64,000 nt of DNA from Epithemia pelagica (Eukaryota; Protista; Bacillariophyta). Positions 14,822 to 57,444 of the stretch are shown here, piece after piece; the first letter of the stretch is position 1; every line of letters starts with the position of its first letter. Below the pieces are notes generated by a model, which was not told where the DNA came from, searched no databases, and saw nothing but the letters and a program-made list of their open reading frames with translations. A program made the position numbers and the translations under genes. The stretch covers positions 2,728,001 through 2,792,000 of the forward strand of contig OX337235.1 of the NCBI GenBank assembly GCA_946965045.2, read 5' to 3'.

Positions 14822-15248
14822 AGCACGGTCCACGAAGCAAACTTGGTTTTGAAACATACTATATCCCGCTAGGAGGTTTTGACTTGAAACCATCGTAAGT
14901 TTACACAAGTACGGGTGCTTTCTGAATAGTCAACCGTGGTGGCATGGTTTTTAAGTGGTCCCTAGTTATGTTTACATGTACGCCCGGTGTAGTTCATTTC
15001 ATTAATGCAAATGGGATGTAGCATGAGTGCGTGTAGCTAGCGTTCAAAAATTGTTTCAAGGTATAAAAAGTAATGAAACGTTATCGTTGATATTGATAGA
15101 GAGATGCTCGTTGAAAAGTCCAAAGTTAGAATAGTGGATGGAGAAATGGGGGGGACTCATAATTGACCCCCAAATCCCAAATATACTCAGATTCTAATTA
15201 TATCTTTAGTCTTTGTGTCATGTCATGAGTCACCAACGACGATGAACA

Positions 15249-24746: not shown

Positions 24747-26577
24747 ATGATGCAAGGGGGGCAGTATCCTGGAGGGTCAGGACCCCAAGTACTTGTACTG
24801 AGTAAGTCGCCGCAATTATTTGCAGTCATGTCGAGTCGACGCGTCTTTGGTTGCGTATGTACAATACACATAAAGTTTTAGTTCAAGACTCTAATGCTTG
24901 TTTTGTTTTGTCGTCGTAGATCAGAAAACGCAGCGTCAGACTGGTCGACCAGCCCAACTGGCTAACATTCGGGCGGCGCGGGCTGTTGCGTCCATTATTC
25001 GGACGACATTAGGGCCTCAAAGTATGCTGAAAATGCTTCTCGATCCAATGGGAAGTATTGTGCTGACCAATGACGGCCACGCCATTTTAAGAGAAGTGGA
25101 TGTTAGCCATCCGGCGGCCAAATCCATGATTGAACTTAGTCGGGCCCAAGATGAAGAGGTTGGTGATGGTACAACATCTGTCATTGTTTTGGCAGCCGAA
25201 GTGCTTGGACAAGCCGAACCCTTTTTGCGAGAAGATAATGTCCATCCTACAGTCTTGGTTTCTGCGTACACAAAGTGTCTGGCAGCGGCTCTTGAGATCA
25301 TTGAGCAACAGGCCATTACTGTAGACGTCATTTCCGACAAGGAATGGATGCAAAAGCTGGTCCAATCATCGCTTTCGACCAAGTTCAGTGGTCGATGGAA
25401 CGATAAAATGGTCGAAATGGCTTTACAGGCCGTCCTCACTGTCGCACAACCCGTGGTTTCTTCTAGCCAGTCTAATGTTGGACTTTCGAATGGATCTACA
25501 TCAGAAACAACCATGCAACCAATGGAAGTTGATTTGAAGCGCTATGCCAAGACGGAAAAGATTCCGGGTGGTGAAATGGAGGATTGCGAAGTGTTGCGCG
25601 GTGTCATGTTTAATAAAGATACGGTCCATTCATCTATGCGACGTAAGATTGTGAATCCTCGAATCTTACTTCTTGACACACCGTTGGAATACAAAAAAGG
25701 AGAATCACAAACGAATATGGAAATCACACAGGAAGAGGATTGGAGTGCCTTGTTGAAAATGGAAGAAGAATATGTCGCCAATATATGCCAAGAGATTATT
25801 GCTGCCAAGCCTGACATTGTCATCACCGAAAAAGGAGTGAGCGATTTGGCACAGCACCATTTGGCGAAGGCGAATATCACAGCTTTCCGGCGGTTGCGCA
25901 AAACGGACAACAATCGAGTGGCCCGTGCCGTGGGTGCGACCATTGTGAGTCGGACCGATGAAATTCAAGAATCCGACATTGGGTTGGGTTGTGGTTTGTT
26001 TGAAATGCGCAAAGTCGGAAATGATTGGTTCTGCTATTTGACAGAATGTAAAGATCCCAAGGCATGTACAATTGTGCTTCGTGGTGGATCCAAGGATGTG
26101 CTGAACGAGGTTGAACGCAACTTGCAAGATGCCATGCAAGTGGTACGGAATGTCGTCCACAATCCCAAACTGGTACCAGGTGGAGGAGCGATCGAAATGG
26201 CATTGTCGGTGGCGTTGAAACGAAGAGGCCAGACTCTTCAAGGCGTCCAACAAGCACCCTTTCTGGCTGTGGCCGAAGCACTGGAAGTCATTCCAAGAAC
26301 CTTGGCGCAGAATTGTGGCGTTAGTGTGATTCGGACAATCACGCAGCTACGTGCCAAGCATGCAGCAGCCTACGACCAAGCGAATGACGAGAAGGCGATG
26401 GTTCGTTGTTCTTGGGGGATCAATGGAGAAACTGGTCAACTAGCGGATATGAACGACTACGGCATTTGGGAACCAGTCAGCGTCAAGGCACAAACCATCA
26501 AAACAGCGATTGAAAGTGCCTGTATGATTCTGCGTATTGATGATATTGTGTCTGGGTCGAAGAAACGGGAGGCCTGA
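24747..26577 (+). CDS. CCT3: T-complex protein 1 subunit gamma; exons 24747-24801 and 24920-26577
   Basis: The intron gtaagt...tag joins VLVL to NQKTQRQTGRPAQLANI. Diagnostic motifs RTTLGPQSMLKMLLDP, GDGTTSV, KIPGG and LRIDDIVSG. Confidence 0.95.
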
Positions 26578-27682: not shown

Positions 27683-28351
27683 AATATATGGTATAGTCTG
27701 AGACTGAGATCAGGTCAGATGTCGATCCCGCTTGTGTTCTACACGCCATTTTCAAAATAACCCAACGTCGTTGTGAATAACCGACGGTCAGACGCATTGC
27801 AATATGCAGAATAAACCCCAGCGGTTACGGGCAAGTATTGCAAAATACCCCCAGCGAGGGAGTTCTGAGGTACGCGAGTAAGGTACTAAGGAGCAAACCA
27901 ACAGAAACGCTCGTATGCGCGCCGTCCATCCATCATCCGCAGTCACAGTCACCACAACCAGACACGCAATCTTATTAACAATAAGGCCATTCTGGGAAAA
28001 TTTCTGCGAGCGCGCATGGCTTTACTATGAAATTCAGTCGTAAACGTACCTGGTACGCGCGTCACTTGTCACTGGGTCTCTACTGTAAGTCATAAACTCA
28101 AAAAAGCATAAATCCTATATTTACGTTCGGAAAACACATTTTTAGTATAAGACGATGACTGCTACTGTAAGTCATAAAACCTAACCAGTGTCATTCTTTG
28201 GACAACCCAACGCACGTTATAGGATATACACAACCATATATATGCATTGGCATGTCGCGCCATTTTCCCCCACGAAACCTCCCTCCACCTCGACACGCCT
28301 TTCGGCCTCATCGTCATCCTAACCTGTAGTAATATTTGTTGTTGTAATACC

Positions 28352-29536
28352 ATGGATGAAGACGATTCATTGATCCTTCTCCTCCTGGAGGAGGAGAAGA
28401 AGAAGAAGAAGCTTCGTCTTGAGGAAGCACAGCGTGTTCGTAATCGTTCGGGAGGGATTCGTCGCGCTGCTCTCCAACATCCAAAATACTCTTCGTTCAT
28501 GAGACTTTACAATAGTGGCGATGACCCCTCGTTGATAGCTTTGTGTGGCTTTGATCATGAGTCATTTGAGAGTCTGCTAAAGCTGTTCACGCCACTGTTT
28601 AACAGTTGGAGTCCCTATCCACAGAAAGCGAACAAAAAGTTTCACATGAGACGCGTTCGACAAACTGGGAGAACAGGACGGAAACGGCAAATAGACGCAA
28701 CGATATGTCTAGGATTAGTGCTCGCCTGGACGCGTACTCGTGGTTCAACGATCCCCTTGCAGGTCATCTTTGGGATGACTGCGAACCCAGTTTCTGTTTG
28801 GTTGCGCTTTGGGCGTCGTCTTCTGGTCAAAGTCCTCCAGAACCATCCGGACGCCGAGGTGAGAATGCCAACGCGAAGCGAAATAGCGAGCTTCAAGGCG
28901 GTTATTAGGGAGAAATACCCTGTGCTCAAGAATGTGTGGGGAGCGATGGACGGACTCAAAGTCCTCATCGAAGCTAACCCTGATCTTGAAAACATCTTCT
29001 ATAATGGATGGAAATGCGATCACTATATTTCAAACCTTTTTGTTTTTTCACCAGATGGAAGGATCCGGGCGTGTTACATCAACGCGCCTGGATCCTGGCA
29101 CGATTCTACGTTGGCCCACCTCTCGAAGATCTACGAAAAATTAGATGCCGTGCACGACAGTGAACAACGACGTGGTGGCGGGCGCATTGTCGTGGACTCT
29201 GCATTCGGATCGGAGAATCGCCCGAGCTTGTTGAAGTCGTATCAAAACAATGTGGATCGACAGGGTCGAGTGAGAAATACAAGGGAGATGTACAAGGCGG
29301 CCACTTCGGTGCGACAGCTGTCCGAGTGGGGGATGAGAGGCTTGCAAGCTTCCTTCCCTCGCCTGAAAGACCGCCTTAAGTATGAAGAGATGGGAGAAAG
29401 GAAGATTGTCCTGTCTCTCATTGTCCTATTGTACAACTACAGGGCTTCGTGTGTTGGCTTCAACCAGATTCGGACGACATTTTACCCCCATTTGTATCTT
29501 ACAGGACAACAGGGATACCATTCATCTCTTTCGTAG
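28352..29536 (+). CDS. Harbinger-type DDE transposase (DDE_Tnp_4-like)
   Basis: GAMDG, GSWHDS, IVVDSAF and SEWGMRGLQASFPRLK motifs; ATG at 28352 is in frame with track ORF 28247. Confidence 0.9.
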   Translation: MDEDDSLILLLLEEEKKKKKLRLEEAQRVRNRSGGIRRAALQHPKYSSFMRLYNSGDDPSLIALCGFDHESFESLLKLFTPLFNSWSPYPQKANKKFHMRRVRQTGRTGRKRQIDATICLGLVLAWTRTRGSTIPLQVIFGMTANPVSVWLRFGRRLLVKVLQNHPDAEVRMPTRSEIASFKAVIREKYPVLKNVWGAMDGLKVLIEANPDLENIFYNGWKCDHYISNLFVFSPDGRIRACYINAPGSWHDSTLAHLSKIYEKLDAVHDSEQRRGGGRIVVDSAFGSENRPSLLKSYQNNVDRQGRVRNTREMYKAATSVRQLSEWGMRGLQASFPRLKDRLKYEEMGERKIVLSLIVLLYNYRASCVGFNQIRTTFYPHLYLTGQQGYHSSLS

Positions 29537-29561
29537 TCAACTATACCAGTTATTTTATCTA

Positions 29562-30902
29562 CTAAATTTCTTTTCCTACCTTGTCATCATTCTGGTCAAT
29601 GTTCTGGTCTTCAGGTGTTAGAGTGTGTTGCGGTCGGAGCTGACCCGCAGGCGTTGTAGTGTTCTGTTGCGGTTGGACCTGTTGCGGTTGGACCTGTCCC
29701 ATTACATTGGGTGCAAGCAACATGAGCAAGTTACTCTGTTGCTGCATCATCATTTGTAGCATTGATTGTTGCATAGCCATTGACTGTTCCGCACGACGCT
29801 CGTCTCTCTCACGTCGCTCGTCATCACGCTTCTGTCGCTCTTCTTTCTCACGGTCTTCTTTCTCTCTGCGAAACTTTCTTTCTTTCTCTTCCGCATCTTG
29901 ACGATTCTGCTGCGACACCATCATGAATTTCATGATAGCGTCAGTTTTGTCGTCGGAGTAAATTGTTCGCTTGCGTCGACTTTTCGTATCCGACCGAAGG
30001 GGCTTTGATCCATGCGGCTTGAGACTTGTTTTGGGGGTCTCTAGATTTCCCTCCTTGTCTTGCTTCTCTCCTTGTTGATCGTCTGCTTCTTCGTCGTCTT
30101 CTTCATCTTCTCCGTAGTCTGCTTCTCCATCTGCAACACTCTCTCCTTCTGACGAGGTCGAGTCGAAGCCAATGTCGTGTCTGTTTGGCTTTTCGCCAAC
30201 ATCACATCGTGTTTGGATGTTGATGAGGATCTGTTTGGCCGCCTTCACTTCGTCGGGACAATGTGGATCTCCCGTAGGAATCTTTCTCCCATGTAGCGCA
30301 CCAAAACGGCGTTTGAGAGATTCCCTGTCCCTGAGGCGGTCGGACGCCTTGAACCTTTCGTTGTAGGCGTCCGTTACTCGATCCCAATCGTATTGCCCTG
30401 CAGGTTCTATGGCGGAAATAAGATCAAGGAGGTACCAGGTCTCGTCTTCAGTGAAGTTCCTCCCTCTCGCTCTACCTGGTCCTCCATTACCCTTTTTTGC
30501 GTGTGATACGCTTCCTTTTTTCGCTTTGGTTGTTGTGTTCGATGTTGCTGTGTTTTTTCCGGAGGCTGTAGGAGCTGATGTTGGAGCAGTCTTCTTTGCC
30601 TTCTTGGCTTTGGCCTTCTTGTCGTTGTTTTGCTCTTGTAGGAGTCTCTTAATGCGGAGTCGGGGTGACTCACGTCGCACTGGTGGGACACTTGTTGCTG
30701 CAGGAGTGGGAGGGACGCTGGTTTTTGTCAAATTCAGTTGTTCGGACAAGTCAGGAGGTCCCTGTGTGACTGGCATCTGGGTCGGGGCATCTTCCTCCTC
30801 TGACTCCTCTGAGGTGAAGTCGTCCTGGTTTTGGGCCAAGCCTGCCTCGACTTCGGCAAAGGCTCTCTCCATCTTCTTTTCAAGATCCTCGGCCATTGTC
30901 AA
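29562..30902 (-). CDS. Myb/SANT-like DNA-binding accessory protein of the Harbinger-type element
   Basis: RGRNFTEDETWYLLDLI...WDRVTDAYNERF...SLKRRF...PTGDPHCP, followed by a coiled-coil, Gln-rich tail. Confidence 0.75.
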   Translation of the reverse strand: MTMAEDLEKKMERAFAEVEAGLAQNQDDFTSEESEEEDAPTQMPVTQGPPDLSEQLNLTKTSVPPTPAATSVPPVRRESPRLRIKRLLQEQNNDKKAKAKKAKKTAPTSAPTASGKNTATSNTTTKAKKGSVSHAKKGNGGPGRARGRNFTEDETWYLLDLISAIEPAGQYDWDRVTDAYNERFKASDRLRDRESLKRRFGALHGRKIPTGDPHCPDEVKAAKQILINIQTRCDVGEKPNRHDIGFDSTSSEGESVADGEADYGEDEEDDEEADDQQGEKQDKEGNLETPKTSLKPHGSKPLRSDTKSRRKRTIYSDDKTDAIMKFMMVSQQNRQDAEEKERKFRREKEDREKEERQKRDDERRERDERRAEQSMAMQQSMLQMMMQQQSNLLMLLAPNVMGQVQPQQVQPQQNTTTPAGQLRPQHTLTPEDQNIDQNDDKVGKEI

Positions 30903-32299: not shown

Positions 32300-33450
32300 C
32301 ATTGTTTCAAGTACGCGGCTGCAACGAGTGAGGTTTGGCTGACTAGTTGGTTGAGGATCCAAGGGATTTTTCCATGTCGGATTCTGGTCGAGACACACGT
32401 CCTATGCAGCGCTTGCAGTTCCACCTGCATTGTCCTGGGAAACTTGCTGAGAAATTGAGGTGGACGAGTTAGCAGGAGAGGACCTTGGGATTTGTCGAAC
32501 GGAAGAGCAGGCCAATCGTTTATAATCCCAGACCGCAACTCTCCGAAGCGTCGGATCGAGTGGAAGACTATCTCTGTCAGTTGCAACAGTGTTATGAGGA
32601 GAAACGGGCGCACAAAAGTATTGGCCCACACCTCCTTCCTTTATTGTGCCATGATCCATGATGGAGACACACAACCAATCCACGCGCCTTTGATCGAATT
32701 CAAGATCTCTTCGACGAAATGATTGACAAGGGTGATGTGTCCGAGCTCGATTCAAAGGCCCTGACCCGAGTCTGTCATGCCTTTTCCGACTGTCATCATC
32801 TGCATGTACTGGATGCCGCGCGACGCATTCTCGATGACATGTCGAGGCCCCATCAACCGGCGTTCGGAAAACCCACGCGACATACCTTCTCGGCTCGACC
32901 GTTCTGTCAGCTTCTGGTCATGAGGAACGGGTAGAGGAAGCCCAATGCCTCCTTATCATTGTAGAAGAATTTCCAGAGAGTAAGGGAGATTCAAATCTTC
33001 ACCGAATGCCGTCTGCTTCAATGCCTTGATCTGGGTCTGGGCCAGATCCGGAGATGCTTCTCGGATGTCGAAGCCATTCTTCTTCATGTGGTCGCAGCCA
33101 TGGACACAACAGGGGCAGATGGAAGTCGAAGTGAACTGCTGCTATACCAGAAAAACTTGGCCGGTGTCCTGACTTCGCTCAGGGAACCAGATGCCGCCCG
33201 TTGCCGAGATTATCCAACAATTGGAATATTCTTGAAAGAGCAACAGTGCAATATAGACAACCCGGCATTTACTGGCATTTACCATGGGCTCTTGACGTGT
33301 TCGTGAGGGCGAGATGAGCTCCGATGTGCTCATGGCACAACAGTACACTTCAATGTGGCCATTGCGGCCCGGTGAATGCCGCTAGCTGCAATTTCCAAAT
33401 TTGGTGCATGGCCGTGGAAAACTCCAGGTTAGATCGAGGGTCTCTTTCTT
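32300..33450 (+). pseudogene. Degraded PPR pseudogene
   Basis: PPR-like peptides in shifting frames interrupted by stops: VLDAARRILDDM, CFNALIWVWARSGD (~33015-33060) and TTVHFNVAIAAR. Boundaries approximate. Confidence 0.5.
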
Positions 33451-33674: not shown

Positions 33675-33831
33675 TTCCACCAGGCGTTCAGCGTCCATTC
33701 GATGCAGTCAAACGCAGGCTGCAACTCACATGCAGCGCCAACTCGTCTGCCATTCTTTGTGAGTTTGAGCGTCATGTGGGCGTTCCAAGAATATGGTCAA
33801 CAGAGCACGAACAAAGGATGTTGGTGTTGGG
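33675..33831 (-). repeat. Duplicated 5' fragment of the prolyl-hydroxylase-like gene (copy of ~37249-37410)
   Basis: Near-identical sequence ttccaccaggcgttcagcgtcc...gatgttggtgttggg at both positions. Confidence 0.9.
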
Positions 33832-34358
33832 CCATTTCGTCCCACTCAGCAACAATCAAGGCCATTATCATCCCTTGTTCATCGCCCACTGGGACAACAC
33901 CAGCCGCAGCCCCCCTCTCGCAAGCAACAGGGGAAGTGCAGGTTGGCTTACACTGGTTTCCTTCGCTTCCGTTTCAGCAAGTTCAGGTACTCTTTGACAG
34001 CGCTTTCGCGCGACTTTGCATCTTTTCCTCACGGTACTTGTACGCTATCGGTCTCTCACCAGTATTTAGCCTTTGATGAAATTTACCACCACCTTAGAGC
34101 TGTTATCCCAAACAACGCGACTCCAAAGCCAATTCTCACGCATGTGGACGAACGGGAGTCTCACCCTCTCTGTTGCCCCGTTCTAGGGGACTTGGTCCAC
34201 TAGCTGAATGAAAAGGCAACCACAATTCGACAAAGTCGATTCACAAGAAGGCCTATTGGCGCTTCACTCGCCGTTACTGGACCAATCCTAGTTAGTTTCT
34301 TTTCCTCCGCTTATTAATATGCTTAAATTCAGCGGGTCCTCTTGTTTGAGCTGAGATC
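33832..34358 (-). rRNA. Divergent 28S (LSU) rRNA 5' fragment, from the 5' end through D1-D2
   Basis: The minus strand carries conserved LSU motifs in correct order: ACCCGCTGAATTTAAGCATAT, AAGCGGAGGAAAAGAAACTAAC, AGTAACGGCGAGTGAAGCG, GAGGGTGAGACTCCCGT, GACCGATAGCGTACAAGTACCGTGAGG, GAGTACCTGAA, GAAGCGAAGGAAACCAGTG and GACGAAATGG. It stops just before the post-D2 core. Confidence 0.92.
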
Positions 34359-36357
34359 AGGGACATAAGACATGAGGATGCATCGCATGTTCATATTGAC
34401 CACCATTTCACACAACCAAGCAAACGGAGAAAGTCGAGAACGATGATAGCTCGTTGCTCGCTGAGGACCACAGGGGCTCCTACGTACTTGAGCCGAGCAC
34501 TCGCTTTGGCGTCCATTCTCGCATTACTTCCTCCCAGGTGAATCGGTGCCTTTAGGATGGTCAGGAAACTATATTACGCGACCACCGTCGACTGAAAGCG
34601 ACAACTCTACAAGGTCGGACTTCGAAGCAAACTCCTTCAACGGGCCAATTAACTCAAAAAGATCTAAAAAATTGGCCCGGCCCTTGACATTTCGGTCCCA
34701 CCAACCTGAAAACGTAGACCCAGCTTCTGGTCCGCTAACGACCGGACGGAAAAGTTGTAGGAGGTATAACATAGACTCCAAATCATGCGATTTCTCCATT
34801 CCCAGAGAGCCTACGGTTGAGTCCGCAATGGCCTGTACAACATCTTGAGCACGCCCGCCATCTGAGCCATCCCGTTTCAGAAGACGCAACGTCGAAGGAT
34901 ACCGCTCCCCCTCGCGTCGACAAAAATCAAAGTCAACGATCATTCCCGTATGCAAAATGCAATTAAGCAACCGTATGTCGCCATGAACAAAACCTTTTCC
35001 ATGCAGTGTCTGCAAGTTCTCCAAAAGCCGTCCGAGCATGGCTGCCGGAACGCGGTGGAACCACTTCTGTCCATCTTCTCTGCCATAAAATTTGGTTGTG
35101 ACAATACAGAGATCATCGTCGATTTCAGTTTCTTCTGCGTTCGGGTCGATAAATTCTCTGACTAACTCGATGTTCGGCTTCCTACGATCTTGTTCCGCAA
35201 CATTGCGGTCGCGATAATCGTAACCCTTGACGACTTTTCTGCTTTTTTTGTGGAGTGATGTGACGTTGCTCAGCATGTACTCCATGAAAGTGCCCTTGAT
35301 TTCAGTCTTGTAGTTTTGAAGGTAACCCTTGATTCCCGAGATGAGCATCTTGAGACCAGCTTCGTTCTGGCCTTCCATCAACATAACCTTGCGGAATGGA
35401 GGTTTATTCGACTCGGAGATCCAAGGAACAATCCCAAATGCTCTAATGTTCAAACAGTTCATGTCTGTGCCATGAACTTGAACTCCGAGTACTGATCGCT
35501 GTGAAACGCTCATGTAGTCCGTTCCATAGCACGCTGATTGGGCTTCGAAATCGTCAAAATTGTTCCGAGGCTTGTACTCCAACAAAACAGCGACCTGCCC
35601 ATCACCGGAAGTTGTCTCCTCGCAGAATACAGCGATATCAACGTCCTGCTTTGACGATGGTTTGCTATCTGGGAGGATTGGGGTTTGGTGAACGACAGTG
35701 CAATCATCTGAGCGCAGTTCGTGCGCCAGGATTCTGCCTAACTGGCAACTTCGAGGAGTCTCGAGGTCAGTCGTTCGTCCTTCTTTCGGGCACCATGCCG
35801 TCACCTGTTCATTCATGATTCTGCGTGCGGTTGCGGAAAATTCAAAGCTCTTTTTCATTGCCTTCAGGAAAGCAATGTACGATGGAACATGAACAAAGGA
35901 TCCGTACATAAACCCACTAGGCAAAACATCCCTTTCGTACAACTTTCTCTTGTTGGTATCAGTCCCAAGGGTAGATGCTGAATGATCAAAAGTAGGTGGG
36001 GGGACATAATCAATGATTCTTTGTGTTTGCCTATTTGCGTTGTCGATCAGCAAGTCCGCAATCTGAGGGATACGCTGCCGATCTAAAACTCCTCCGGCTA
36101 ATAAGGTTAGAACAATACCTTCACACACTAATGTCGCTGCGTCACGCCAAAATTCATCCGACCTCATCGGAGCATCATTGCGTTTCTTCACCGCATTGAC
36201 CAGCGCCTCAATGTATTCTTCCTTCGTAGATTCTGACATTTTGGTTGGTCCCTCTTCTTCGTCTCTCTCTTTTCATGGTTTCCCCAAGGTCGTCATTATG
36301 ACAATACACCACCGACCAGGCCGGCTTGAACGGATGAAGGACGGACTGTCCATTCAT
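34253..36357. repeat. 2.1-kb segmental repeat, copy 1 (direct repeat of 53779-55861)
   Basis: Near-identical sequence; three indels (2, 9 and 11 nt) account for the 22-nt length difference. Confidence 0.95.
34569..36239 (-). CDS. PD-(D/E)xK nuclease plus atypical protein kinase (Crinkler/CR-effector-like architecture), copy 1
   Basis: DVDIAV...VAVLLEYK nuclease-like motif; kinase motifs LHGKGFVHGDIRLLN, MIVDFDFC and HDLESMLY. Confidence 0.65.
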   Translation of the reverse strand: MSESTKEEYIEALVNAVKKRNDAPMRSDEFWRDAATLVCEGIVLTLLAGGVLDRQRIPQIADLLIDNANRQTQRIIDYVPPPTFDHSASTLGTDTNKRKLYERDVLPSGFMYGSFVHVPSYIAFLKAMKKSFEFSATARRIMNEQVTAWCPKEGRTTDLETPRSCQLGRILAHELRSDDCTVVHQTPILPDSKPSSKQDVDIAVFCEETTSGDGQVAVLLEYKPRNNFDDFEAQSACYGTDYMSVSQRSVLGVQVHGTDMNCLNIRAFGIVPWISESNKPPFRKVMLMEGQNEAGLKMLISGIKGYLQNYKTEIKGTFMEYMLSNVTSLHKKSRKVVKGYDYRDRNVAEQDRRKPNIELVREFIDPNAEETEIDDDLCIVTTKFYGREDGQKWFHRVPAAMLGRLLENLQTLHGKGFVHGDIRLLNCILHTGMIVDFDFCRREGERYPSTLRLLKRDGSDGGRAQDVVQAIADSTVGSLGMEKSHDLESMLYLLQLFRPVVSGPEAGSTFSGWWDRNVKGRANFLDLFELIGPLKEFASKSDLVELSLSVDGGRVI

Positions 36358-36616
36358 GTTTTTTGCACTAGGTAGGTAGAACCAATATGCCACAAGAACG
36401 TCCTTTGATGGATGAACGCCATTTTAGCTGCGGTGTACATTGCACTGATTCATTTTGCTAGGTTCAAGCTCAGTATGGCGACCAAAGCCAGGACAAAACT
36501 TCATAGTTCGCATGAGAACGGCACACTCGTGCAACACTCCTTCGACTCGCGCAAGTGTCGATCAAAGCATGTTATGTATGTGTTATGATAACGGTTGACA
36601 GATAATTGATCACAGT

Positions 36617-37349
36617 TCACGTCGCTGCGATGCAACATATTCTTCTGGTGTTGCATGAATCTCGAATGACACTGCCGGCACTTTCCGGGTGAGCCTGGAC
36701 TGCATGGTCTGCCATTGTGTTGCGACGGCCATCTTTATCGTAGTTTAGCCAGGTAAAGGCCGGCCCTTTCTTTGGAACAATAGTCACATTAGCATTGGGA
36801 AATATAGTACCTGCACCGCCGTCAGTAAGATACATGAGGAACGTCATAGCGCGCTTGTCATGGTGCAAATGCATCGGAGTGGTACCTCCGCTTGTGCGCT
36901 GAAACTTTGCATAGGGATGTGTCAATTCAATGTCAGTATCCCACATGGCTTTGGCTTTATCTTGCAAGGAAATGATGAAGTTGGCATCCTCTTTTTGGAC
37001 CATCACAAACCTTATCCTCTGAGATCTTGAAACAGGTCTTTCCTTGACTTGGATGAGCATTGAGGGCATCCTTCTTCTCATCTCTACATGGACCAAACAT
37101 GTTGAAATCATTGCCGTACTTTTGAGCTAGGACAAGCAACTTGTCAACTTCCTCACTGGTCAGAAAGTCTTCAAAGGACCATATGCCAGGATTTGCCGCT
37201 ATCAGATGGCCCTTTCCTTCTTTGGGCCGAGCCCACGGTTCAGTACTATTCCACCAGGCGTTCAGCGTCCATTCGATGCAGTCAAACGCAGGCTGCAACT
37301 CACATGCAGCGCCAACTCGTCTGCCATTCTTTGTGAGTTTGAGCGCCAT
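36617..37349 (-). pseudogene. Prolyl-4-hydroxylase-like 2OG-Fe(II) oxygenase with a frameshift near 36990
   Basis: Frame 1 has IWSFEDFLTSEEVDKLL; frame 2 has LHHDKRAMTFLMYLTD...GTIFP...PKKG...HAVQ. No plausible intron at the switch. Confidence 0.6.
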
Positions 37350-38031
37350 GTGGGCGTTCCAAGAATATGGTCAACAGAGTACGAACAAAGGATGTTGGTG
37401 TTGGTGTTGGGCGTTGGGCGATTGCACCATCACCAATCACCAATCACCATACTAAAATGTCTACCTCCTAGCGGGTTTGAGAGTTCTATGGTCTTTCCGT
37501 CAATCATTGGGGGTGGAGGAAGTCTCTCCGTAGTCCGTAGTTCCCGCTAGATAATCAAAAATACCGGGTAATCCTTGTTTTACAGGATTTCAGTGGAAAC
37601 CCGGATAATTGCGACACCATTTTTGAAAAATTCATCTCTTTCCTCTATAGTGGTACAGCTTACCCCCAAAACAGTCGGTGACACCCGTACTACCTTCACC
37701 CCGCCACGTTTTTTCCCTATATTCCCCTTCTATTCTTTTAAGGGCAAACGGCGCCGTTATTTAATTTTTTTCCATCAACCTTACACTAAGAAATTGTATT
37801 GTATTTTAATCTCTTCAATGTCGTTACGCTGGCAATGTGGTAAGCGTTTTCCCCCCTGCCGCAAATTCCCTACCCCCAAGCAGGGGCGAGAATCTGGTCG
37901 CACAAAAAGAAGAATCTCTATTCTCACCCCCAAGGCGCGACGGAAAGTCCCCGAGGTTGATACAAAACTCCAAAACCACACATGCATTCATCACGGTGTT
38001 GGAGGTGCAGTGGTTGATAACAAAGTCTATA

Positions 38032-39829
38032 ATGTCGACATCCTCTCACAAGCGAACCCGAAGGTCTCAAAAGGCTGTCAGGAAAGCCTTCGGCACCCGT
38101 AGTGCCTCCGCACCGCCTTATACAACGCAGAATTCAGATGATAGCAGACCCATCGCCGAAACTACATCTGCACCTCAATCTCAAGAAGCCAACACCGACC
38201 CTGTCTCCACCGGCAACGCGACCTCGTCGGTTGCTTTGTTGCCCTCTGCTTCCTGTGGTGTTCCGTACGAAACTCTGCAAATCTGCCGGACTCAACCAGG
38301 AAGCAACGGACAACCTTCCAACAGGTCTGAACCGTCCTCAACAAGAGCAATGGACAGTTCAATCTCGTCGGTGTCAACTACACCACGCTTCCATGCGATC
38401 CCTCCACCGGTCTTTCAACCCTCTATGTTATTTCCCACAGTGCCACCACAACGTCAGACCACCGCAGCTTCCGCTTCAAACAACAGCAACACTTCAACTT
38501 CCGTCCAAAGCACGGTCTTGTCTTCATCCTTTCACGTTTTGCACCGTCGCGATTCCATTGGACTTGTTCAATTTGGTACGCAATCTTCCCCTCCCAAGCC
38601 CATGAATGTGCAGAGTCCAAAAGAGGCGGACGCTTCCACACCAGCTGGTACTTTGGGAACCGAAATAAATGAGCAAACGTCAACCACAACCATGCACAAC
38701 AACCCTCAGCAAGCGACCACTCCGTACACTGTTGCTACTGCCGCCGCGCCTCCGACTGCACAAACCACCGGAACTGATTCGTTGTCATCCCTTGAACTCG
38801 TCGGTTCCGGTCTTAATCTCACACGTCGGCCACCCACTTCAGCAATGCAACCCTATATACATCCAAACCTGAAGTTACAAGTACCCAAAATCACGGAGGG
38901 TTCTTTTTTGGTTCCATTGCGACGCCACCCCCCTCTTTCTTGTCGAACCCCAGGTGACTCGGAAAAAAAAAAACCCTCCAATGGTTCTTGTGTCTTCTAC
39001 TCCGGATGATGTATCTTCACTGTCGTTGGTTTCCAATCACTGTGGTCCTTTGATGCGACGTGCTAAGAACTACACGAAGGGTGTAACACGGTCTCCCACT
39101 GGCACAGCAAAACAACGTCGTTATAACAACACCAACAAACGAAAGCGATCCTCTAGTGACAGCGACAGTGTACCACTGGCCTCCTCGTCCCTGATGTCGG
39201 ATGCTGTGCCTGGTCTATCAAGTACTTTGGCTGCCCCAATTCAAATGGTTACTTCATTTGCCTTGCGAACGCTCTTTCTGGAAGATATTTGGTTCTTGGA
39301 GGTAGGAACACCCATCGTCTTGTTCTTCCGAAGCGAACTCCTACCACCACGTTATGCAAAAGGTTGGTTGGATGTTGCGCGGGACACTCACCAATCACAA
39401 CACATTCCTCAAGTCATGTGCCAGGGCAATCTCTACAATCAACTTTGTGGATATGTGCACTTAAATCCTTCCGGTGTTATCCGAAAAGTAACTGGCACCA
39501 AGACATACAACGATATCATCGCTGCAATGTCCGAAAGATCACAGAACGGATTATACCTCAAGTTTCCTGTTTTCTCACCATCGTCTGGTTGCAACCTTGT
39601 TTCCCCCCCACCGATTGCATCCAACAACTCCTATCCTATTTCGAGATCTTTAACTATCCGCAAGCACTGTTCCTTCAGGCCGACTACCACCCGGAAAGGA
39701 GCTGGTACACAATCTTCAAGCGACTGAAAGCTTCTGGTGGAGATAGATTGACCCTTCTACACAGGATAGTCCAAGAAACACCAGGAGACCGCTATAGTCT
39801 AGCGGAATTACGCAACATTTGGCAACAGT
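38032..39829 (+). pseudogene. 5' part of the Academ-like transposase; two frameshifts at homopolymers, then cut by the LTR insertion
   Basis: ORFs 37837-39009, 38954-39727 and 39289-39894 switch frame near A11 (38963-38973) and probably C7 (39603-39609). Removing the insertion gives NIWQQ|FDVKQRH in frame with ORF 48290. Confidence 0.55.
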
Positions 39830-40612
39830 TGTTAGAATTCTCACCGTCTATGGTGGTTAGATTCTACATCTCATCGATTCCCCATGTCACATAGCCTCGT
39901 GCTATCGCATCATGCCCTCTAGCTTCGAGCTATGTTTCCTAGCTTCGCGCTATATCGACCTATATTTCTTCGCAAATCATGAAAAGTGAGAATAGATTGA
40001 CGAACTCACTCTCAAGACTAAATTGGGTCGTGCGGTATTACAACGGACGTAAATTTGGCCGTTGCTCGGACACTGTACTAACGCCCTAAGCGTACGCGCC
40101 CGAAATCATCGAGCGCGCCCAAGCGACATCCGAGCGCTATCGGCATCTATCCGATCCAACGGTCTAAGTATCCCAAGCACGACACACGATCACGCGAGAC
40201 CATATTTCCATTCCCACAATCTCCAAATTGTCAACAAGCTGCGCGCCATGAAAACAACTATGCCAACCCAAAGCAAGAGCTGTTGACCCTGTATATGTTA
40301 TCCGCCCACATATACATGTCATATACATCACATGAATCAACTCCAACTATTCCAAACCTGTTGCCGCCAAGAACCTATGATACATGACCCTTGGCAGGAC
40401 CGAACATTTCACGTAGACCTATCGTAGTAATCAACACACAATCTAACAATATCACCATTTATCACATCCTCTTTTGTGTCCCGACTATCCTTCTGATAGA
40501 CTTCGACTTGCTTGCTTCTCTGACCCTGAGAAGCTTGTATCGGTTGGTGACCTACCTGATTGTCTGCTCTACCGAGCATCAATGTCCCTACGATTCAGAA
40601 AGAATTGTAACA
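39830..40612 (+). repeat. 5' LTR
   Basis: TGTTAGAATT...TTGTAACA; no differences from the 3' LTR seen (constant offset of 7601). Confidence 0.97.
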
Positions 40613-40626
40613 GATTAACAGTCTCA
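40613..40626 (+). promoter_or_regulatory. Putative primer-binding site complementary to the anticodon arm of a tRNA-Asn(GUU)
   Basis: GATTAACAGTCTCA abuts the LTR; its reverse complement is TGAGA-CTGTTAA-TC (stem strand, 7-nt GTT loop, first two pairing bases). Confidence 0.6.
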
Positions 40627-40648
40627 AAGCTTATTTCCTTGTGGTTTC

Positions 40649-41428
40649 ATGGATACTAACGAGATTATCACTCCTGTACGACAGATCTATCGAGCCAACC
40701 TGCATCCCGGGCAGCCCGATACCCTGGTGCAGCAGGAACTGGTGCCGACGCCGAAGGCAGCCAACACATCGGTCAACATCTCCGTCGACAGTTCCAACAG
40801 CAACCCATTCGAGACTCCAACCCAGCCTCACGCTCCGATCCCTGCGCCGTTGCTTCGGCCCCCGAGTCCGCCTCGTCGGCTCGTCCCTTCTCGATCCCGT
40901 CGTACCACCCGGTTGATTGCTGATCATATCAAGTACTTCCGCCAACCAACTTGTTCGACCTTCGATCCCGAGATCATCCGTGGGGAGACCCAGATCGAAC
41001 GCCAGTTCCAATCGGTGACCCACATCGTCGACCAAGAAGACATTGACCGTCTGAACGACCAACTTCACCGCTCTCCGAGGCGTCGCCTCATCTTTGCCGC
41101 CCTCTCGGGCAACCCCATCCGTACTGTCCACCTCCGCTTCCTAACCTTCGAGCGCCCAACTGGATACTACAATACCATCTACGTCGTGAACGCGACGACT
41201 TGCCCTCTGCCTCCTAACGTTGTACGCCTAGATAACTACGTTGCCTACATCCACGAGGTCCATACCATCGAGGACCATCGTGCAACTATCTACCCTTTGC
41301 GTACCGAGGTCGAGAACCACCTGGCTGAAGGTGATACCCCTTCTTCTGTTGCTTGTGCTGCCCCATCTGAGCCTGGAAGCGACTCTGATCATTCGGAAGA
41401 GGGTGAGGATTCAGAGACCGAAGCTTAA
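40649..41428 (+). CDS. Extra ORF of unknown function inside the copia element, upstream of gag-pol
   Basis: Uninterrupted 259-aa ATG ORF starting 36 nt after the LTR, with a Pro-rich N-terminus and an acidic C-terminus. Confidence 0.6.
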   Translation: MDTNEIITPVRQIYRANLHPGQPDTLVQQELVPTPKAANTSVNISVDSSNSNPFETPTQPHAPIPAPLLRPPSPPRRLVPSRSRRTTRLIADHIKYFRQPTCSTFDPEIIRGETQIERQFQSVTHIVDQEDIDRLNDQLHRSPRRRLIFAALSGNPIRTVHLRFLTFERPTGYYNTIYVVNATTCPLPPNVVRLDNYVAYIHEVHTIEDHRATIYPLRTEVENHLAEGDTPSSVACAAPSEPGSDSDHSEEGEDSETEA

Positions 41429-41748
41429 TTACTCATAGTTAACTCCCGTCCTCTCAAAACCTTTCCAAGACTTAAACTCAACGCACATCCGGGTACCCTT
41501 GGTCGCACAACACGCCACACATTCCCGTCAAATCGCGAAAATTCGGCGAAAATTTGTTGAAACTCGGCGAAAATTTGTCGAAATCAACGGAAATTTCCAG
41601 GAGTCGCACATCACAACACACATCCGGGTATTACATACGTGGTACATACGTGGCACACGTGGTACATCCGGGTTCGCATCACATCACACATTAAATAAAC
41701 CACATCACACCGCACATTAAATAAACATCGAACCAACCAAATAACACC

Positions 41749-44700
41749 ATGGATCCTCAATCACCCAAGACACCTACGACTCCTAAGGGAGAAGATAACC
41801 AAGACAATGTCTCGGACACAGACCTATTCGACCACATCATATTTACTGTCTGCCAATTTTTTACCAAAGAAAGGGCTGACTACTTAATGAAGTGGATGAA
41901 ATACCATGGTTTTGAGAACATTACCCATGTTATCTCGTATATGCAAACTAATACCGAGGAATCCATGAAGGAACTGACACAATACAAGGTCAACAAACAG
42001 ACACATGATCTACAAGGCCCCACAAGACAGCAGATCAAGCTCTTGGCTTATTGGGCCACATACAAGACCAATGAAATTCAAGACGAGCTATCCAATAGCG
42101 ACTGGATGAACCTAACGAGGAAAGAGTTCAACACTTGGAGGATCAACACAGATTTCTCTAAGGGACTACCTAGCCAAGTCCCAGTCTCGCCAATGAAGTC
42201 ACCGTCATCTGTGAAATCTGTCAGCACAGTTACTGCCGCATCCCAATCTCAACAAGACCTTACAGCATTCAGAAAGGGAACTAAGCGCGACGCAACTGCA
42301 TATGAGGTATTCAAGGATGAACGATACTACGATTCATTCTGGCGTGTATTCAAGACTACAGCTAAGGCTCAAGGCCTATCCAACGTTCTGAATTTCAAAT
42401 ACACACCACCCCATGATGATGAGTATGCCGAAGAACTTTTTCAAGAGCAACAAGTATTTCTTTACTCCGTTCTTGTCCGTATCATTCAGACTGACCAAGG
42501 TCGAGCCTATGTACGTGAACATGAACATGATGAAGATGCGCGTGCCGTATTGCAGAAGTTACACTCTTTGCATACCGAATCCGACCTAGCAAAGCGAGAA
42601 GTCCTCCGCTTAACCAACTACATTTCCAATCTACGTCTTGACGACACATGGCGCGGAACAACACGTCAATTTCTTCTACACTTTCAAGAGCAGCTACGTT
42701 TGCTAGACAATTTAGTGACATTGTCTGATCGCATCCCTGATCATACCAGGATGACCTTCCTCATGCAAGCTGTAGAAAAGGTACCTGATCTCCGCCGAGT
42801 CAAGATCTTGGATAATGTGGTGAACACCAAATCCGGTGCAAAATCCCTTTGCTATCAATCATACTTCCGTCTCCTTCTAGACGCAGCTTATGACCATGAT
42901 CAAGCAACCCAGTCATCTGTTCATAGTCGCCGTCGACATGTCAAACAACATGAATCACTATATGGCCAAGATACAGATGCTGACATAACCTCACAAGATG
43001 ATATGGAGTATCATGTCCACAACACCAAAGCGACATCTGAATCTCCATCCTCTTCGTCCAAGGTTAGTCTACCGCGTGACCTATGGTTCAAACTTTCTGA
43101 AGAAGATCGCAAGTTGATCATTGAATATAACAAGATGATTCAAGCACCTTCATCAACAACACCGAGGACAGTGCAAACACATGCCCTCGACATTGATCCG
43201 GAACCTGATCCTGATCCCAACCAAGTTGTATCTGATGACGACTCACCTGGCGTAGTCACTGAGCATTCAGATGATTCAGATCCGGTTACACAATTTATCA
43301 ACCAAGCCATGACGACTGATATCAATCACCCGGCAACTGACCTGACTAGTGTTCTTTCTAACGCCAAGTCCAAGACGAGCAAGAAGGTTACTTTCAAAGC
43401 CAACATGCATAAACAAGCAGGACATGTTCCACGCTATCTGTTTTCCAGGAAATCTACTTTACCAGGGAATCAATTGATTGACCGTGGTGCTAATGGAGGA
43501 CTTGCTGGTTCTGACATGCGCATCCTTTCTAAGACTGGCCGCCATATCACTATTGTGGGTATTGATAACCATGAACTTACTGGACTTCCTGTCGTCACAT
43601 GTGCCGCAAAGTTTGAGACCAATGATGGACCTATTGTCGGCATCTTCAATGAATATGCTTATTATGGGAAGGGCTTATCTATCCATGCTCCTGGTCAATT
43701 CGAGCATTTCGGACTTGCTGTTGATGAACGATCTGTTAAAGTTGATGGTAAACAACGCATCACTACACTTGATGGTCGTGCCATACCCCTTCACATTAAG
43801 GATGGGTTAGCCTACATCCACTCCTTGGGTATCCCCAGCGACGATGACATGGATACCTTACCTCAGATCATCTTCACGTCACCCGACACATGGGATCCTG
43901 GTGTTCTGGACCATTCGTATTCTCCCACACCCTCTGACAATGATCCTGATTGGAAACACGTCAAGACTGATGGTAGTATGTCGAACCATCCATATGACAA
44001 CTATGGGGAGTACACTGATCGTGTTGTTTGTAACCTCAATCTCCTTTTGGATCTCCCATACGATCATGGACCTGACGACGCACCCTTCTTTTCTATCTAT
44101 GCTGACGCAGAAGGTAATGATCCTACACTTCATGCCTCTGTCCACCGTCGTTACCAGGAAGCGTATGACTGGAAGAAGTTCCGTCCATTCTTTGGTTGGC
44201 AATCTGAAGATGTTATTGCCGATACGTTCAAGCACACTACACGTAATGGTAGCATTACTTTTGACCACGACACCCTCAAGAAACATTTCAAGGCTCGCAA
44301 TCCGGTCCTTAATATACCTCGACGCCATGAACCCGTTGCTACTGACTCGGTTTTCTCCGACACCCCTGCTGTTGACCATGGCGGTAAAGTCGCACAAATC
44401 TTTGTTGGTCGAGATACTCTGGTTACTGATATCTATGGGATCAAGTCAACCAAACAGTTTGTCAATACTCTTCAGGACAACATCCGGTTTCGTGGTGCCA
44501 TGGAGACTCTTATCAGTGATGGTGGTTCATCTCTCATCTCTCAAAAGGTTAAAGACATTCTTCGCACTTTGCTTATTGGGGAGTATCGATCCGAACCTTA
44601 TCATCAACACCAGAATAAGGCTGAAAACCGTTACCAGACCGTTAAACGTATGACCAACGCTCTCATGAATGCCACTGGTTGCCCTGCCAACACCTGGCTT

Positions 44701-47436: not shown

Positions 47437-48213
47437 AATTCTCACCGTCTATGGTGGTTAGATTCTACATCTCATCGATTCCCCATGTCACATAGCCTCG
47501 TGCTATCGCATCATGCCCTCTAGCTTCGAGCTATGTTTCCTAGCTTCGCGCTATATCGACCTATATTTCTTCGCAAATCATGAAAAGTGAGAATAGATTG
47601 ACGAACTCACTCTCAAGACTAAATTGGGTCGTGCGGTATTACAACGGACGTAAATTTGGCCGTTGCTCGGACACTGTACTAACGCCCTAAGCGTACGCGC
47701 CCGAAATCATCGAGCGCGCCCAAGCGACATCCGAGCGCTATCGGCATCTATCCGATCCAACGGTCTAAGTATCCCAAGCACGACACACGATCACGCGAGA
47801 CCATATTTCCATTCCCACAATCTCCAAATTGTCAACAAGCTGCGCGCCATGAAAACAACTATGCCAACCCAAAGCAAGAGCTGTTGACCCTGTATATGTT
47901 ATCCGCCCACATATACATGTCATATACATCACATGAATCAACTCCAACTATTCCAAACCTGTTGCCGCCAAGAACCTATGATACATGACCCTTGGCAGGA
48001 CCGAACATTTCACGTAGACCTATCGTAGTAATCAACACACAATCTAACAATATCACCATTTATCACATCCTCTTTTGTGTCCCGACTATCCTTCTGATAG
48101 ACTTCGACTTGCTTGCTTCTCTGACCCTGAGAAGCTTGTATCGGTTGGTGACCTACCTGATTGTCTGCTCTACCGAGCATCAATGTCCCTACGATTCAGA
48201 AAGAATTGTAACA
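47431..48213 (+). repeat. 3' LTR
   Basis: Copy of 39830-40612; contains the gag-pol stop codon (TGT TAG). Confidence 0.97.
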
Positions 48214-48218
48214 ACAGT

Positions 48219-49327: not shown

Positions 49328-49381
49328 GAAATCGTATGTAATGCATGAAAGTTCCATAAATATATCGAAGTACTGCTAGTG

Positions 49382-53778: not shown

Positions 53779-53884
53779 CTATTGGCGCTTCACTCGCCGT
53801 TACTGGACCAATCCTAGTTAGTTTCTTTTCCTCCGCTTATTAATATGCTTAAATTCAGCGGGTCCTCTTGTTTGAGCTGAGATC
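53779..53884 (-). rRNA. Second, shorter copy of the divergent 28S 5' fragment (~106 nt)
   Basis: Matches 34253-34358, including ACCCGCTGAATTTAAGCATAT and the TTGG/CCAA covariation. Confidence 0.92.
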
Positions 53885-54092
53885 AGGGACATAAGACATG
53901 AGGATGCATCGCATGTTCATATTGACCACCATTTCACACAACCAAGCAAACGGAGAAAGTCGAGAACGATGATAGCTCGTTGCTCGCTGAGGACCAGGGG
54001 CTCCTACGTACTTGAGCCGAGCACTCGCTTTGGCGTCCATTCTCGCATTACTTCTTCCCAGGCGAATCGGTGCCTTTAGGATGGTCAGGAAA

Positions 54093-55754
54093 CTATATTG
54101 CGCGACCACCGTCGACTGAAAGCGACAACTCTACAAGGTCGGACTTCGAAGCAAACTCCTTCAACGGGCCAATTAACTCAAAAAGATCTAAAAAATTGGC
54201 CCGGCCCTTGACATTTCGGTCCCACCAACCTGAAAACGTAGACCCAGCTTCTGGTCCGCTAACGACCGGACGGAAAAGTTGTAGGAGGTATAACATAGAC
54301 TCCAAATCATGCGATTTCTCCATTCCCAGAGAGCCTACGGTTGAGTCCGCAATGGCCTGTACAACATCTTGAGCACGCCCGCCATCTGAGCCATCCCGTT
54401 TCAGAAGACGCAACGTCGAAGGATACCGCTCCCCCTCGCGTCGACAAAAATCAAAGTCAACGATCATTCCCGTATGCAAAATGCAATTAAGCAACCGTAT
54501 GTCGCCATGAACAAAACCTTTTCCATGCAGTGTCTGCAAGTTCTCCAAAAGCCGTCCGAGCATGGCTGCCGGAACGCGGTGGAACCACTTCTGTCCATCT
54601 TCTCTGCCATAAAATTTGGTTGTGACAATACAGAGATCATCGTCGATTTCAGTTTCTTCTGCGTTCGGGTCGATAAATTCTCTAACTAACTCGATGTTCG
54701 GCTTCCTACGATCTTGTTCCGCAACATTGCGGTCGCGATAATCGTAACCCTTGACGACTTTTCTGCTTTTTTTGTGGAGTGATGTGACGTTGCTCAGCAT
54801 GTACTCCATGAAAGTGCCCTTGATTTCAGTCTTGTAGTTTTGAAGGTAACCCTTGATTCCCGAGATGAGCATCTTGAGACCAGCTTCGTTCTTGCCTTCC
54901 ATCAACATAACCTTGCGGAATGGAGGTTTATTCGACTCGGAGATCCAAGGAACAATCCCAAATGCTCTAATGTTCAAACAGTTCATGTCTGTGCCATGAA
55001 CTTGAACTCCGAGTACTGATCGCTGTGAAACGCTCATGTAGTCCGTTCCATAGCACGCTGATTGGGCTTCGAAATCGTCAAAATTGTTCCGAGGCTTGTA
55101 CTCCAACAAAACAGCGACCTGCCCATCACCGGAAGTTGTCTCCTCGCAGAATACAGCGATATCAACGTCCTGCTTTGACGATGGTTTGCTATCTGGGAGG
55201 ATTGGGGTTTGGTGAACGACAGTGCAATCATCTGAGCGCAGTTCGTGCGCCAGGATTCTGCCTAACTGGCAACTTCGAGGAGTCTCGAGGTCAGTCGTTC
55301 GTCCTTCTTTCGGGCACCATGCCGTCACCTGTTCATTCATGATTCTGCGTGCGGTTGCGGAAAATTCAAAGCTCTTTTTCATTGCCTTTAGGAAAGCAAT
55401 GTACGATGGAACATGAACAAAGGATCCGTACATAAACCCACTAGGCAAAACATCCCTTTCGTACAACTTTCTCTTGTTGGTATCAGTCCCAAGGGTAGAT
55501 GCTGAATGATCAAAAGTAGGTGGGGGGACATAATCAATGATTCTTTGTGTTTGCCTATTTGCGTTGTCGATCAGCAAGTCCGCAGTCTGAGGGATACGCT
55601 GCCGATCTAAAACTCCTCCGGCTAGAACACTAAATTCACACAGTAATGTCGCTGCGTCACGCCAAAATTCATCCGACCTCATCGGAGCATCATTGCGTTT
55701 CTTCACCGCATTGACCAGCGCCTCGATGTATTCTTCCTTCGTAGATTCTGACAT
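54093..55754 (-). CDS. PD-(D/E)xK nuclease plus atypical kinase, copy 2 (553 aa)
   Basis: Near-identical to 34569-36239. Confidence 0.65.
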   Translation of the reverse strand: MSESTKEEYIEALVNAVKKRNDAPMRSDEFWRDAATLLCEFSVLAGGVLDRQRIPQTADLLIDNANRQTQRIIDYVPPPTFDHSASTLGTDTNKRKLYERDVLPSGFMYGSFVHVPSYIAFLKAMKKSFEFSATARRIMNEQVTAWCPKEGRTTDLETPRSCQLGRILAHELRSDDCTVVHQTPILPDSKPSSKQDVDIAVFCEETTSGDGQVAVLLEYKPRNNFDDFEAQSACYGTDYMSVSQRSVLGVQVHGTDMNCLNIRAFGIVPWISESNKPPFRKVMLMEGKNEAGLKMLISGIKGYLQNYKTEIKGTFMEYMLSNVTSLHKKSRKVVKGYDYRDRNVAEQDRRKPNIELVREFIDPNAEETEIDDDLCIVTTKFYGREDGQKWFHRVPAAMLGRLLENLQTLHGKGFVHGDIRLLNCILHTGMIVDFDFCRREGERYPSTLRLLKRDGSDGGRAQDVVQAIADSTVGSLGMEKSHDLESMLYLLQLFRPVVSGPEAGSTFSGWWDRNVKGRANFLDLFELIGPLKEFASKSDLVELSLSVDGGRAI

Positions 55755-57444
55755 TTTGGTTGGTCCCTCTTCTTCCTCATGGTTTCCCCAAGGTCGTCAT
55801 TATGACAATACACCACCGACCAGGCCGGCTTGAACGGATGAAGGACGGACTGTCCATTCATCTCTCATCGAGAGATACTATAATAATATGAGAACTGGGC
55901 GTTCTCCTGTGGTGGGCTGCCAAAGTGTGTTGAGCGGGTGGGGAAAATAGTTGAGACTGGCCAATTAGAAACTGCTGAGGAAGAGCTGCCGTGATACTTC
56001 CTGCCAATGGTCTCTAAAACTGGAGAACTTGAGCGCACGGGAGTCGATAGCAAGCCAGCAATGGAAATTGCGTTTGGGTGGAGAAGGACAGCCGTTTGTG
56101 GTGGTTGATGGGGTGTTGCATCGACCCTATTGTGTAATCCTTAACAAACCTGTGGGAAAGAGCACCCCGAATGGCCAATGCGAAGGAATACATGCTTTCA
56201 GCCCCACAAAATAAAGGTGTTGTATAGGAAAGTCAGGCCACCAGACTCCATCGGTCCTCTAGGGCGCTTCCAAAGTGCAATCACTTGCCTCATTGTCCCG
56301 CGTTTGGCAACCAAACGGGTAGCATGGGCTCTTGTCGTGTGCAACACTGTTCACCGCATCATCATCACCACCAAAATCTGATCATCATCGTCTGATCATC
56401 ATCATCCTGTTCCTGAAGAGTGCGCAGAAAGTATCAGTTTGCATCGCTACTCATCAAATTCTCCTTGTAGCAGAAGGAAGCTCGCCGTGTCGTCACTCTG
56501 ATGACGTCGGCACGAAAAATCAAGTCCACGCTGGACCTCCTGTGGTAAAATGAACGCTCAACAAAAGAAAGCGTCCATCGATAGGCGTTCTCGCCTGTCC
56601 TTCCTGTTCTCAACCCTCGTAACATTCGTCAAAAAGTGTTCTGTTCTCTTTCTTCAGTATCTGGTGTTTGAGGTTGGCTGAGCACTTCCAAGTAGTCTAA
56701 CCATCCGGGGCTATTTCCATGGACACCTCCCGTTCCTCGCGACAGTCCCAAGTTGTGGCGCGCGTAGCCGTGATGGCTTGTATCGGTACCGAAACAAGAC
56801 CAAGTATTTTTTCCTTTCAATCGATTTTCTCCTTCTTGTTCTGCAACAACAATCTGTGCATGGCTCTGGCCCCATTACCGCGCGGTGTTCTGATTCTGAC
56901 CTTGTCTGGTAAAGGTTACATTCCAAGTTGAAGAAGAAGGCTCTGTTTCCGTCTCCAATTGGATTATATCTTTCTCCTCGTCGACAAAAGATGTATTGGA
57001 GCTTGATTCTACTTTCTACGAAACACATTGAATTGATATTGTTGTTTGTCCTCTCCAAACCCATGTTACGAACAGTCAACATGATCCTTTAGAAGCTTCG
57101 AGATGTTCGGCGATGGAAAGGGTCAGCGGGATAGAACGGACAGGATACTTTCGTTTCAGCTTCATTACGGTCGCACGCATAGCAAAGCAGAAGTTGCATC
57201 TAAGTCAATGTGCCATGCCGCGCTTTGATATAATGAGGCACTGGTTTCCATGCTCCAGCCATAAAGATTTTGTGCTAATTTTGCATAATAACTATATCTG
57301 GGCAAAGAGAAGATGGATACTATAGCCTTTGCCATCAAAAACCAAGAAACGCACCGATTCTCGAACTCCTGTTTGTCACCTTTGAAGGTTTATCAGGACG
57401 ATATTCTTGTGTAGAGCCATTGCATCGACCGTTAATGTCATTTT

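Follow-up and report, generated by a model that had tools for sequence, protein, structure and literature searches.

What is the 5′ end of a 28S rRNA doing alone beside a protein-coding gene of a diatom genome, and why do some of its helices differ from those of other eukaryotes on both sides of the pairing? The segment lies in a 64 kb stretch of DNA, the whole of which was analysed and is here called the window. A preliminary description called it highly divergent, held that its substitutions preserve helices, and proposed a second rRNA class, an rRNA-derived non-coding RNA carried by a mobile unit, or a foreign long-branch rDNA as its source; that it might simply be a piece of the species' own unusual rDNA was given as a fallback. 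The fallback is the reading that holds: 33832–34420 is very probably best explained as an orphan pseudogene fragment that derives from the nuclear rDNA of the host diatom itself, and the 28S part is 97.4% identical to the main rDNA.

Results

Identity and limits of the rDNA piece

In an Rfam search of the whole window, the eukaryotic LSU rRNA model RF02543 matched 33781–34336 with 277.7 bits; when the region was searched alone the match scored 280.3 bits and began at model position 1, which corresponds to 34359. The fragment covers positions 1 to ~527 of the 3401 positions of the model, homology ending at 33832. A second LSU match, overlooked in the preliminary description, was found at 53783–53862 (90 bits, model positions 24–103). 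Beyond these two LSU 5′ fragments, Rfam detected no 18S, 5.8S or further 28S in the 64 kb window, and the full 18S-5.8S-28S unit of the same type that had been suggested as something to look for is absent from it. Upstream of the 28S start there are 61 nt of ITS2 alone and then the 3′ flank of a protein gene, giving a total length of 589 bp for the rDNA piece (61 nt from the end of ITS2, then 28S from position 1 to ~527; Table 1).

Table 1. Features of the locus, in window coordinates
Feature	Position	Strand	Evidence
Orphan 28S (LSU) rRNA 5′ fragment: D1, core helices and most of D2	33832..34359	minus	Rfam RF02543; alignment A1 with 11 environmental rDNAs; host high-depth contig
3′ end of ITS2, 61 nt	34360..34420	minus	Host rDNA contig X1 record 4; similarity to orthologue contig L012 ends at 34418
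156-nt direct repeat, downstream copy, abutting the 28S break point	33675..33830	minus	Self-BLAST
156-nt direct repeat, native upstream copy, with ATG at 37349	37249..37404	minus	Self-BLAST; ORF list
2OG-Fe(II)-oxygenase-like gene remnant	36617-37349	minus	Weak PF13640 match, E = 0.0046
556-aa atypical protein-kinase-like ORF with HGDIRLLN motif	34569..36239	minus	ORF list; sub-threshold Pkinase/APH/RIO matches
Repeat unit copy A: 118 nt upstream, kinase-like ORF, 3′ flank, 61 nt ITS2, 28S 1-106	34253..36357	minus	Self-BLAST
Repeat unit copy B: 553-aa ORF (54093-55754), ITS2 (53886-53946), 28S 1-107 (53778-53885)	53779..55861	minus	Self-BLAST; Rfam

The piece is bounded by non-rDNA at both ends, with junctions at 34420/34421 and 33831/33832. 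At the second of these the 28S part ends at GACGAAATGG; true rDNA goes on with TTTTCTTTTTCCCGTCTTGAAACACGG, as do all nine close environmental relatives described below, whereas the window passes into a 156-nt repeat. Since ITS2 was copied along with the start of the 28S, the source was rDNA or pre-rRNA and not mature 28S, and a retrocopy of mature 28S is ruled out by those 61 nt. A functional nuclear LSU rRNA gene was likewise rejected as a candidate, given the partial model coverage, the lack of an 18S-ITS1-5.8S-ITS2-28S unit and the broken conserved pairs and bases.

Comparison with the main rDNA of the host

The main rDNA was represented by high-depth Logan contigs from the source organism's runs and was compared with the window as a list of differences. 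Between 65 and 71% of the region's words are present in runs X1–X4 (organism A), and contigs of these runs were placed on the region at a likeness of at least 80%. One contig (X3 record 13; 523 nt, depth 3408) spans 33832–34333 with 13 differences over 502 nt and no gaps, which is the 97.4% identity given above; where it overhangs at 33832, its sequence is that of TTTTCTTTTTCCCGTCTTGAA in reverse complement, with which genuine 28S continues in the environmental contigs L002–L011. Another (X1 record 4; 1602 nt, depth 2000) spans 33918–34420 with 20 differences over 503 nt and is unlike the window beyond 34420. Contig depth is 2000–3400 for the rDNA type, as against ~113 for the single-copy flank and ~250 for the neighbouring kinase-like ORF, and on the first two of these values the high-depth contigs were taken to be the multi-copy main rDNA. 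The gene–ITS2 junction is itself bridged by a Logan contig (X1 record 5, 34360–34623). Divergence of the 28S part from the main rDNA is ~2.6%. By subtraction, 34334–34420 accounts for about 8–10 of the 20 differences seen with X1 record 4, a density far above that in the rest of the fragment, and the ITS2 piece may come from a variant rDNA unit.

This comparison, which the preliminary description had set beforehand as its refuting test, came out against the new-RNA readings: with ~97% identity to the high-copy rDNA of the host, the segment is neither a second rRNA class nor a mobile-unit RNA nor a foreign rDNA. The term 'highly divergent' stands only against a generic eukaryote and does not apply against the main rDNA of the host.

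Helices shared with related diatoms

The four motifs on which the structural argument had been built are all present on the minus strand at the positions reported: (i) GCGCGAAAGCGC at 34011–34000; (ii) TTGG at 34285–34282 with CCAA at 34259–34256; (iii) GTTGTT-TGGGAT-AACAGC at 34116–34099; and (iv) CCCC-TAGAAC-GGGG at 34189–34176. The first two are indeed both-sided helix changes relative to the Rfam eukaryotic consensus, from CUUU-GAAA-AGAG to GCGC-GAAA-GCGC and from UcCcu/agGgA to UGGUC/CGCCA, respectively. Motif (iv) is not a helix change at all, as the consensus helix is also CCCC/GGGG and a single loop base differs (UAGAAC vs UGGAAC); CCCC-TGGAAx-GGGG is present in 9 of 9 close environmental relatives. 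Motif (iii) is private to the window copy, with an uncompensated C·U mismatch beside it; the sequence of this region is GAGTTGT-TTGGGATT-GCAGCTC in the main rDNA and in each of the nine close relatives.

A metagenome scan with the pattern GGATTGG...CCAA yielded 11 contigs (L001–L011), in which the TTGG...CCAA helix is present by construction; the GCGC-GAGA/GAAA-GCGC helix, which the pattern did not demand, occurs in nine of the 11 (alignment A1, helix table). Nine environmental contigs are 85–88% identical to the fragment over ~430–490 nt (nearest, 88%), and the four contigs tested (L003, L005, L008 and L010) contain 18S-ITS1-5.8S-ITS2-28S in normal order with full Rfam scores. Because helices (i) and (ii) are common to true rDNA units of the clade, they evolved in functional rRNA, earlier than the event that copied the fragment; the helices that are unlike those of textbook eukaryotes are lineage traits, inherited intact from the functional rRNA of the host. 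Every conserved single-stranded motif listed in the preliminary description is common to the fragment and to related diatom LSU rRNAs. The diatom-like signatures noted there agree with the CCT-gamma (TCP-1) gene of the window (24898–26577), which supports a diatom source, being 90% identical to that of Epithemia clementina and 74–76% identical to those of Phaeodactylum, Fistulifera and Seminavis, also raphid pennates; by this gene the host is a raphid pennate with close affinity to the Rhopalodiales.

Changes private to the window copy

The listed differences from the main rDNA are at 33879, 33950, 34026, 34079, 34092, 34103, 34104, 34117, 34173, 34184 and 34252; these 11 of the 13 were positioned from the contig listing, and a twelfth (33911) was deduced from a second assembly (L014). 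The main rDNA equals the clade consensus wherever the clade is conserved, so that the window states are derived. In the RNA sense, the changes from main to window are five G>A, two C>U, two C>G and one each of U>G, U>A and A>C. At 34117 an A–U pair with 34098, paired in 11 of 11 environmental rDNAs, in L014 and in the main rDNA, has become a C·U mismatch; at 34252 a long-range C–G pair, paired in L014 and the main rDNA, has become G·G; at 34026 the invariant G of GUGAGGGAAAG has become A; and at 34103 a U·G closing pair has become U–A. The remaining private changes sit in loops or junctions of the Rfam alignment. In a scripted count of pairs, no compensating substitution was found opposite any of the ~12 private changes. 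The window copy scores 280.3 bits with Rfam and the main-like allele of L014 scores 317.6 bits, a loss of ~37 bits. The private changes are decay and not compensated evolution: the paired substitutions predate the fragment, and those that are private to it are uncompensated.

The kinase-like gene and the duplicated unit

The rDNA piece starts 148 nt past the stop codon of a kinase-like ORF, which has weak Pfam matches and atlas feature matches to Pkinase clusters at 0.94–0.98. Seven homologues were found, none of them named except for one 'hypothetical protein', and the family to which the ORF belongs is small and confined to this lineage. The family is present on contig L012, from a related diatom, and on contig L013, neither of which contains rRNA. 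The L012 homologue is 79% identical as protein, and over 36270–34418 its DNA is 88% identical to the window, the similarity ending there; as this orthologue is without rDNA, the piece was added beside the gene in the lineage of the host.

The gene and the start of the rDNA form a unit present twice in the window, the two copies being 98.4% identical over 2105 nt (self-BLAST). Copy B, 19.5 kb away, has 28S positions 1–107 only and then unrelated sequence, whereas copy A runs on to 33832; at the position equivalent to 34252, copy B still has the main-type C. Copies number ~2–3 by depth, all of them joined to the same kinase-like gene. An rRNA-derived SINE or retrocopy was considered and rejected, as a tail was not found and there are not many dispersed copies.

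A 314-nt contig (depth 3.2) of the environmental metatranscriptome X8, corresponding to window 35142–35455, is 99% identical to the kinase-like ORF, a hint that the gene, or this species' DNA, occurs in that RNA library; the other X8 matches are to rRNA of related organisms, on conserved parts of the fragment only.

Junctions and neighbourhood

The downstream copy of the 156-nt repeat reproduces, from the neighbouring 2OG-oxygenase-like gene, the first ~33 codons and the region before them, and is 98.7% identical to the native copy by self-BLAST. The gene–ITS2 junction reads ...CTCCGTTT/G/CTTGGTTG..., and microhomology at the junctions is 0–3 nt. An empty-site allele was not found.

Just downstream of the 156-nt duplicate, at 33000–33450, contig depth in the host runs is 2,000–15,000 as against ~110 for single-copy DNA, marking a very high-copy repeat. 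Direct repeats of 783 nt, 100% identical, at 39830–40612 and 47431–48213 surround an ORF of 1895 aa (41749–47436), and the whole, 39830–48213, looks like an LTR retrotransposon of very recent origin. At 28247–30902, a DDE_Tnp_4 (PIF/Harbinger-type) transposase ORF (28247–29536) adjoins a DUF6818 ORF (29562–30902), so that the neighbourhood probably has a further transposon. Further away, at 61809–63541, is a large inverted repeat with 543-nt arms, 99% complementary and 647 nt apart, the inner parts of which consist of short, ~16-nt tandem-like repeats.

Allelic differences in a second assembly

Both junctions of the rDNA piece are identical to those of the window in L014 (ENA contig ctg1315l), and from this recurrence in a second assembly we conclude that the fragment is real and not an assembly artefact. 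Comparison of L014:20670–21200 with window 33832–34252 shows 11 differing sites, at every one of which L014 has the main-rDNA base. Between the window and L014 there are 11 substitutions in 421 nt of the fragment (2.6%) as against 29 in ~3670 nt of the flank (0.8%), and a derived A at 33879 is common to the two alleles. The pattern in L014 is consistent with recent ectopic conversion of the fragment by the array, over a tract of at least 340 bp.

L014 contains three copies of the kinase-like gene, one of them inverted and partial, and one a hybrid in which the upstream flank of copy A is joined to the downstream flank of copy B. The DNA of window ~37871–51890, within which the LTR-type element falls, is absent between the gene copies in L014. 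The gene cluster is structurally polymorphic and the locus is prone to rearrangement.

Discussion

The 28S segment of the window is an ordinary find: its identity with the main rDNA, its sharp limits, its absence from the orthologous locus and its private changes leave a new RNA class unsupported. Our current view of its origin is that a 589 bp stretch would have been copied at the DNA level out of rDNA and joined to the 3′ flank of the kinase-like gene by end-joining or template-switch repair, after which a 156-nt scrap copied from 3.4 kb upstream would have been added behind the rDNA. The gene-plus-rDNA unit would later have been duplicated, copy B keeping 28S 1–107 only; the fragment presumably yields no ribosomal RNA and would have drifted neutrally since. 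It is from the anatomy of the junctions, a chain of gene flank, 589 bp of rDNA, 156 bp copy and other DNA such as complex rearrangements typically leave, that we infer both this type of repair and the order of events.

A different route, to which we give only a small probability, is that the rDNA travelled as RNA, either as a chimeric pre-rRNA/kinase-mRNA retrocopy formed by template switch or by transduction of flanking rDNA by a mobile element. The region is rich in transposons, including the LTR element with its identical 783-nt LTRs and the DDE_Tnp_4 ORF, and the 3418 bp block 33831–37248 is flanked by the 156-nt direct repeats. However, neither junction has a poly(A) or A-rich tract, inside the block there is no ORF for a reverse transcriptase, a transposase or a Rep/helicase, and a search for terminal inverted repeats around it found none. 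In L013 the kinase-like family has ordinary genes for neighbours, the copy number by depth is just ~2–3, and the 156-nt repeat derives from the neighbouring gene and is not a target-site duplication of anonymous DNA.

That the segment represents a functional, divergent second type of rRNA, or a structured rRNA-derived non-coding RNA under selection, is scarcely credible. Helices (i) and (ii) do differ from the eukaryotic consensus on both sides, and two haplotypes or assemblies retain the fragment, but the same helices are identical in the main rDNA of the host and in related true rDNAs, the fragment stops at ~527 of 3401 positions with no 18S or 5.8S nearby, the private changes break two conserved pairs at a cost of ~37 Rfam bits, and copy B retains just 107 nt of 28S. 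Foreign rDNA from a symbiont, prey organism or contaminant, whether integrated or mis-assembled, has a negligible chance of being the source, for although environmental runs contain parts of the segment (share 0.05–0.09), its 97.4% identity to the host's high-depth rDNA compares with 88% to the nearest environmental rDNA, and both junctions recur in the independent assembly L014, the gene–ITS2 junction being bridged by X1 record 5 as well.

With an orphan fragment of the host's rDNA as the preferred reading, the differences between the window and L014 call for comment. Either ectopic gene conversion restored the L014 allele or the window allele decayed unusually fast. Conversion, if true, would mean that concerted evolution reaches beyond the array in a diatom. 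It is conceivable, though we think it unlikely, that the fragment still exchanges sequence with the rDNA array or, alternatively, forms part of a putative 3′ UTR of the kinase-like gene.

In itself the piece matters little. It does provide a clean example of how helix-preserving differences from textbook rRNA can be lineage traits inherited by a dead fragment, and a candidate should therefore be compared with the rDNA of its host before a new RNA class is called. Of minor value are its use as a marker of a transposon-rich gene cluster, prone to rearrangement and unlike in the two assemblies, and, with its ~2.6% decay, as a dated neutral marker of GC>AT mutation bias in a raphid pennate related to Epithemia.

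Filler DNA and templated insertions occur at the junctions of double-strand-break repair and of template switching of the MMBIR/FoSTeS type. The locus resembles such junctions in having two unrelated pasted pieces in a chain, with sharp joints, microhomology of 0–3 nt and no poly(A); it differs from the established cases in that the mechanism is deduced here from anatomy. Like the LSU rRNA (RF02543) of the related diatoms L002–L011, the fragment has the helices typical of the lineage; unlike that rRNA, it consists of positions 1 to ~527, with two conserved pairs disrupted and an invariant base changed. Its closest counterparts are the rDNA orphons. Dispersed, decaying pieces of rDNA are already well described, and in the human genome rDNA-like sequence has been reported to be dispersed outside the arrays and degrading (Robicheau et al., 2017, Genome Biol Evol 9:380, PMC5381670). 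In common with orphons, the window piece is a truncated part of a 45S-type unit with non-rDNA flanks and no array in the window, and it diverges from the homogenised array copies regardless of RNA structure. Unlike the orphons of that study, it is young (~2.6% in 28S), 589 bp long, fused to the 3′ flank of a gene with which it was co-duplicated, and carried by a raphid pennate diatom rather than a mammal.
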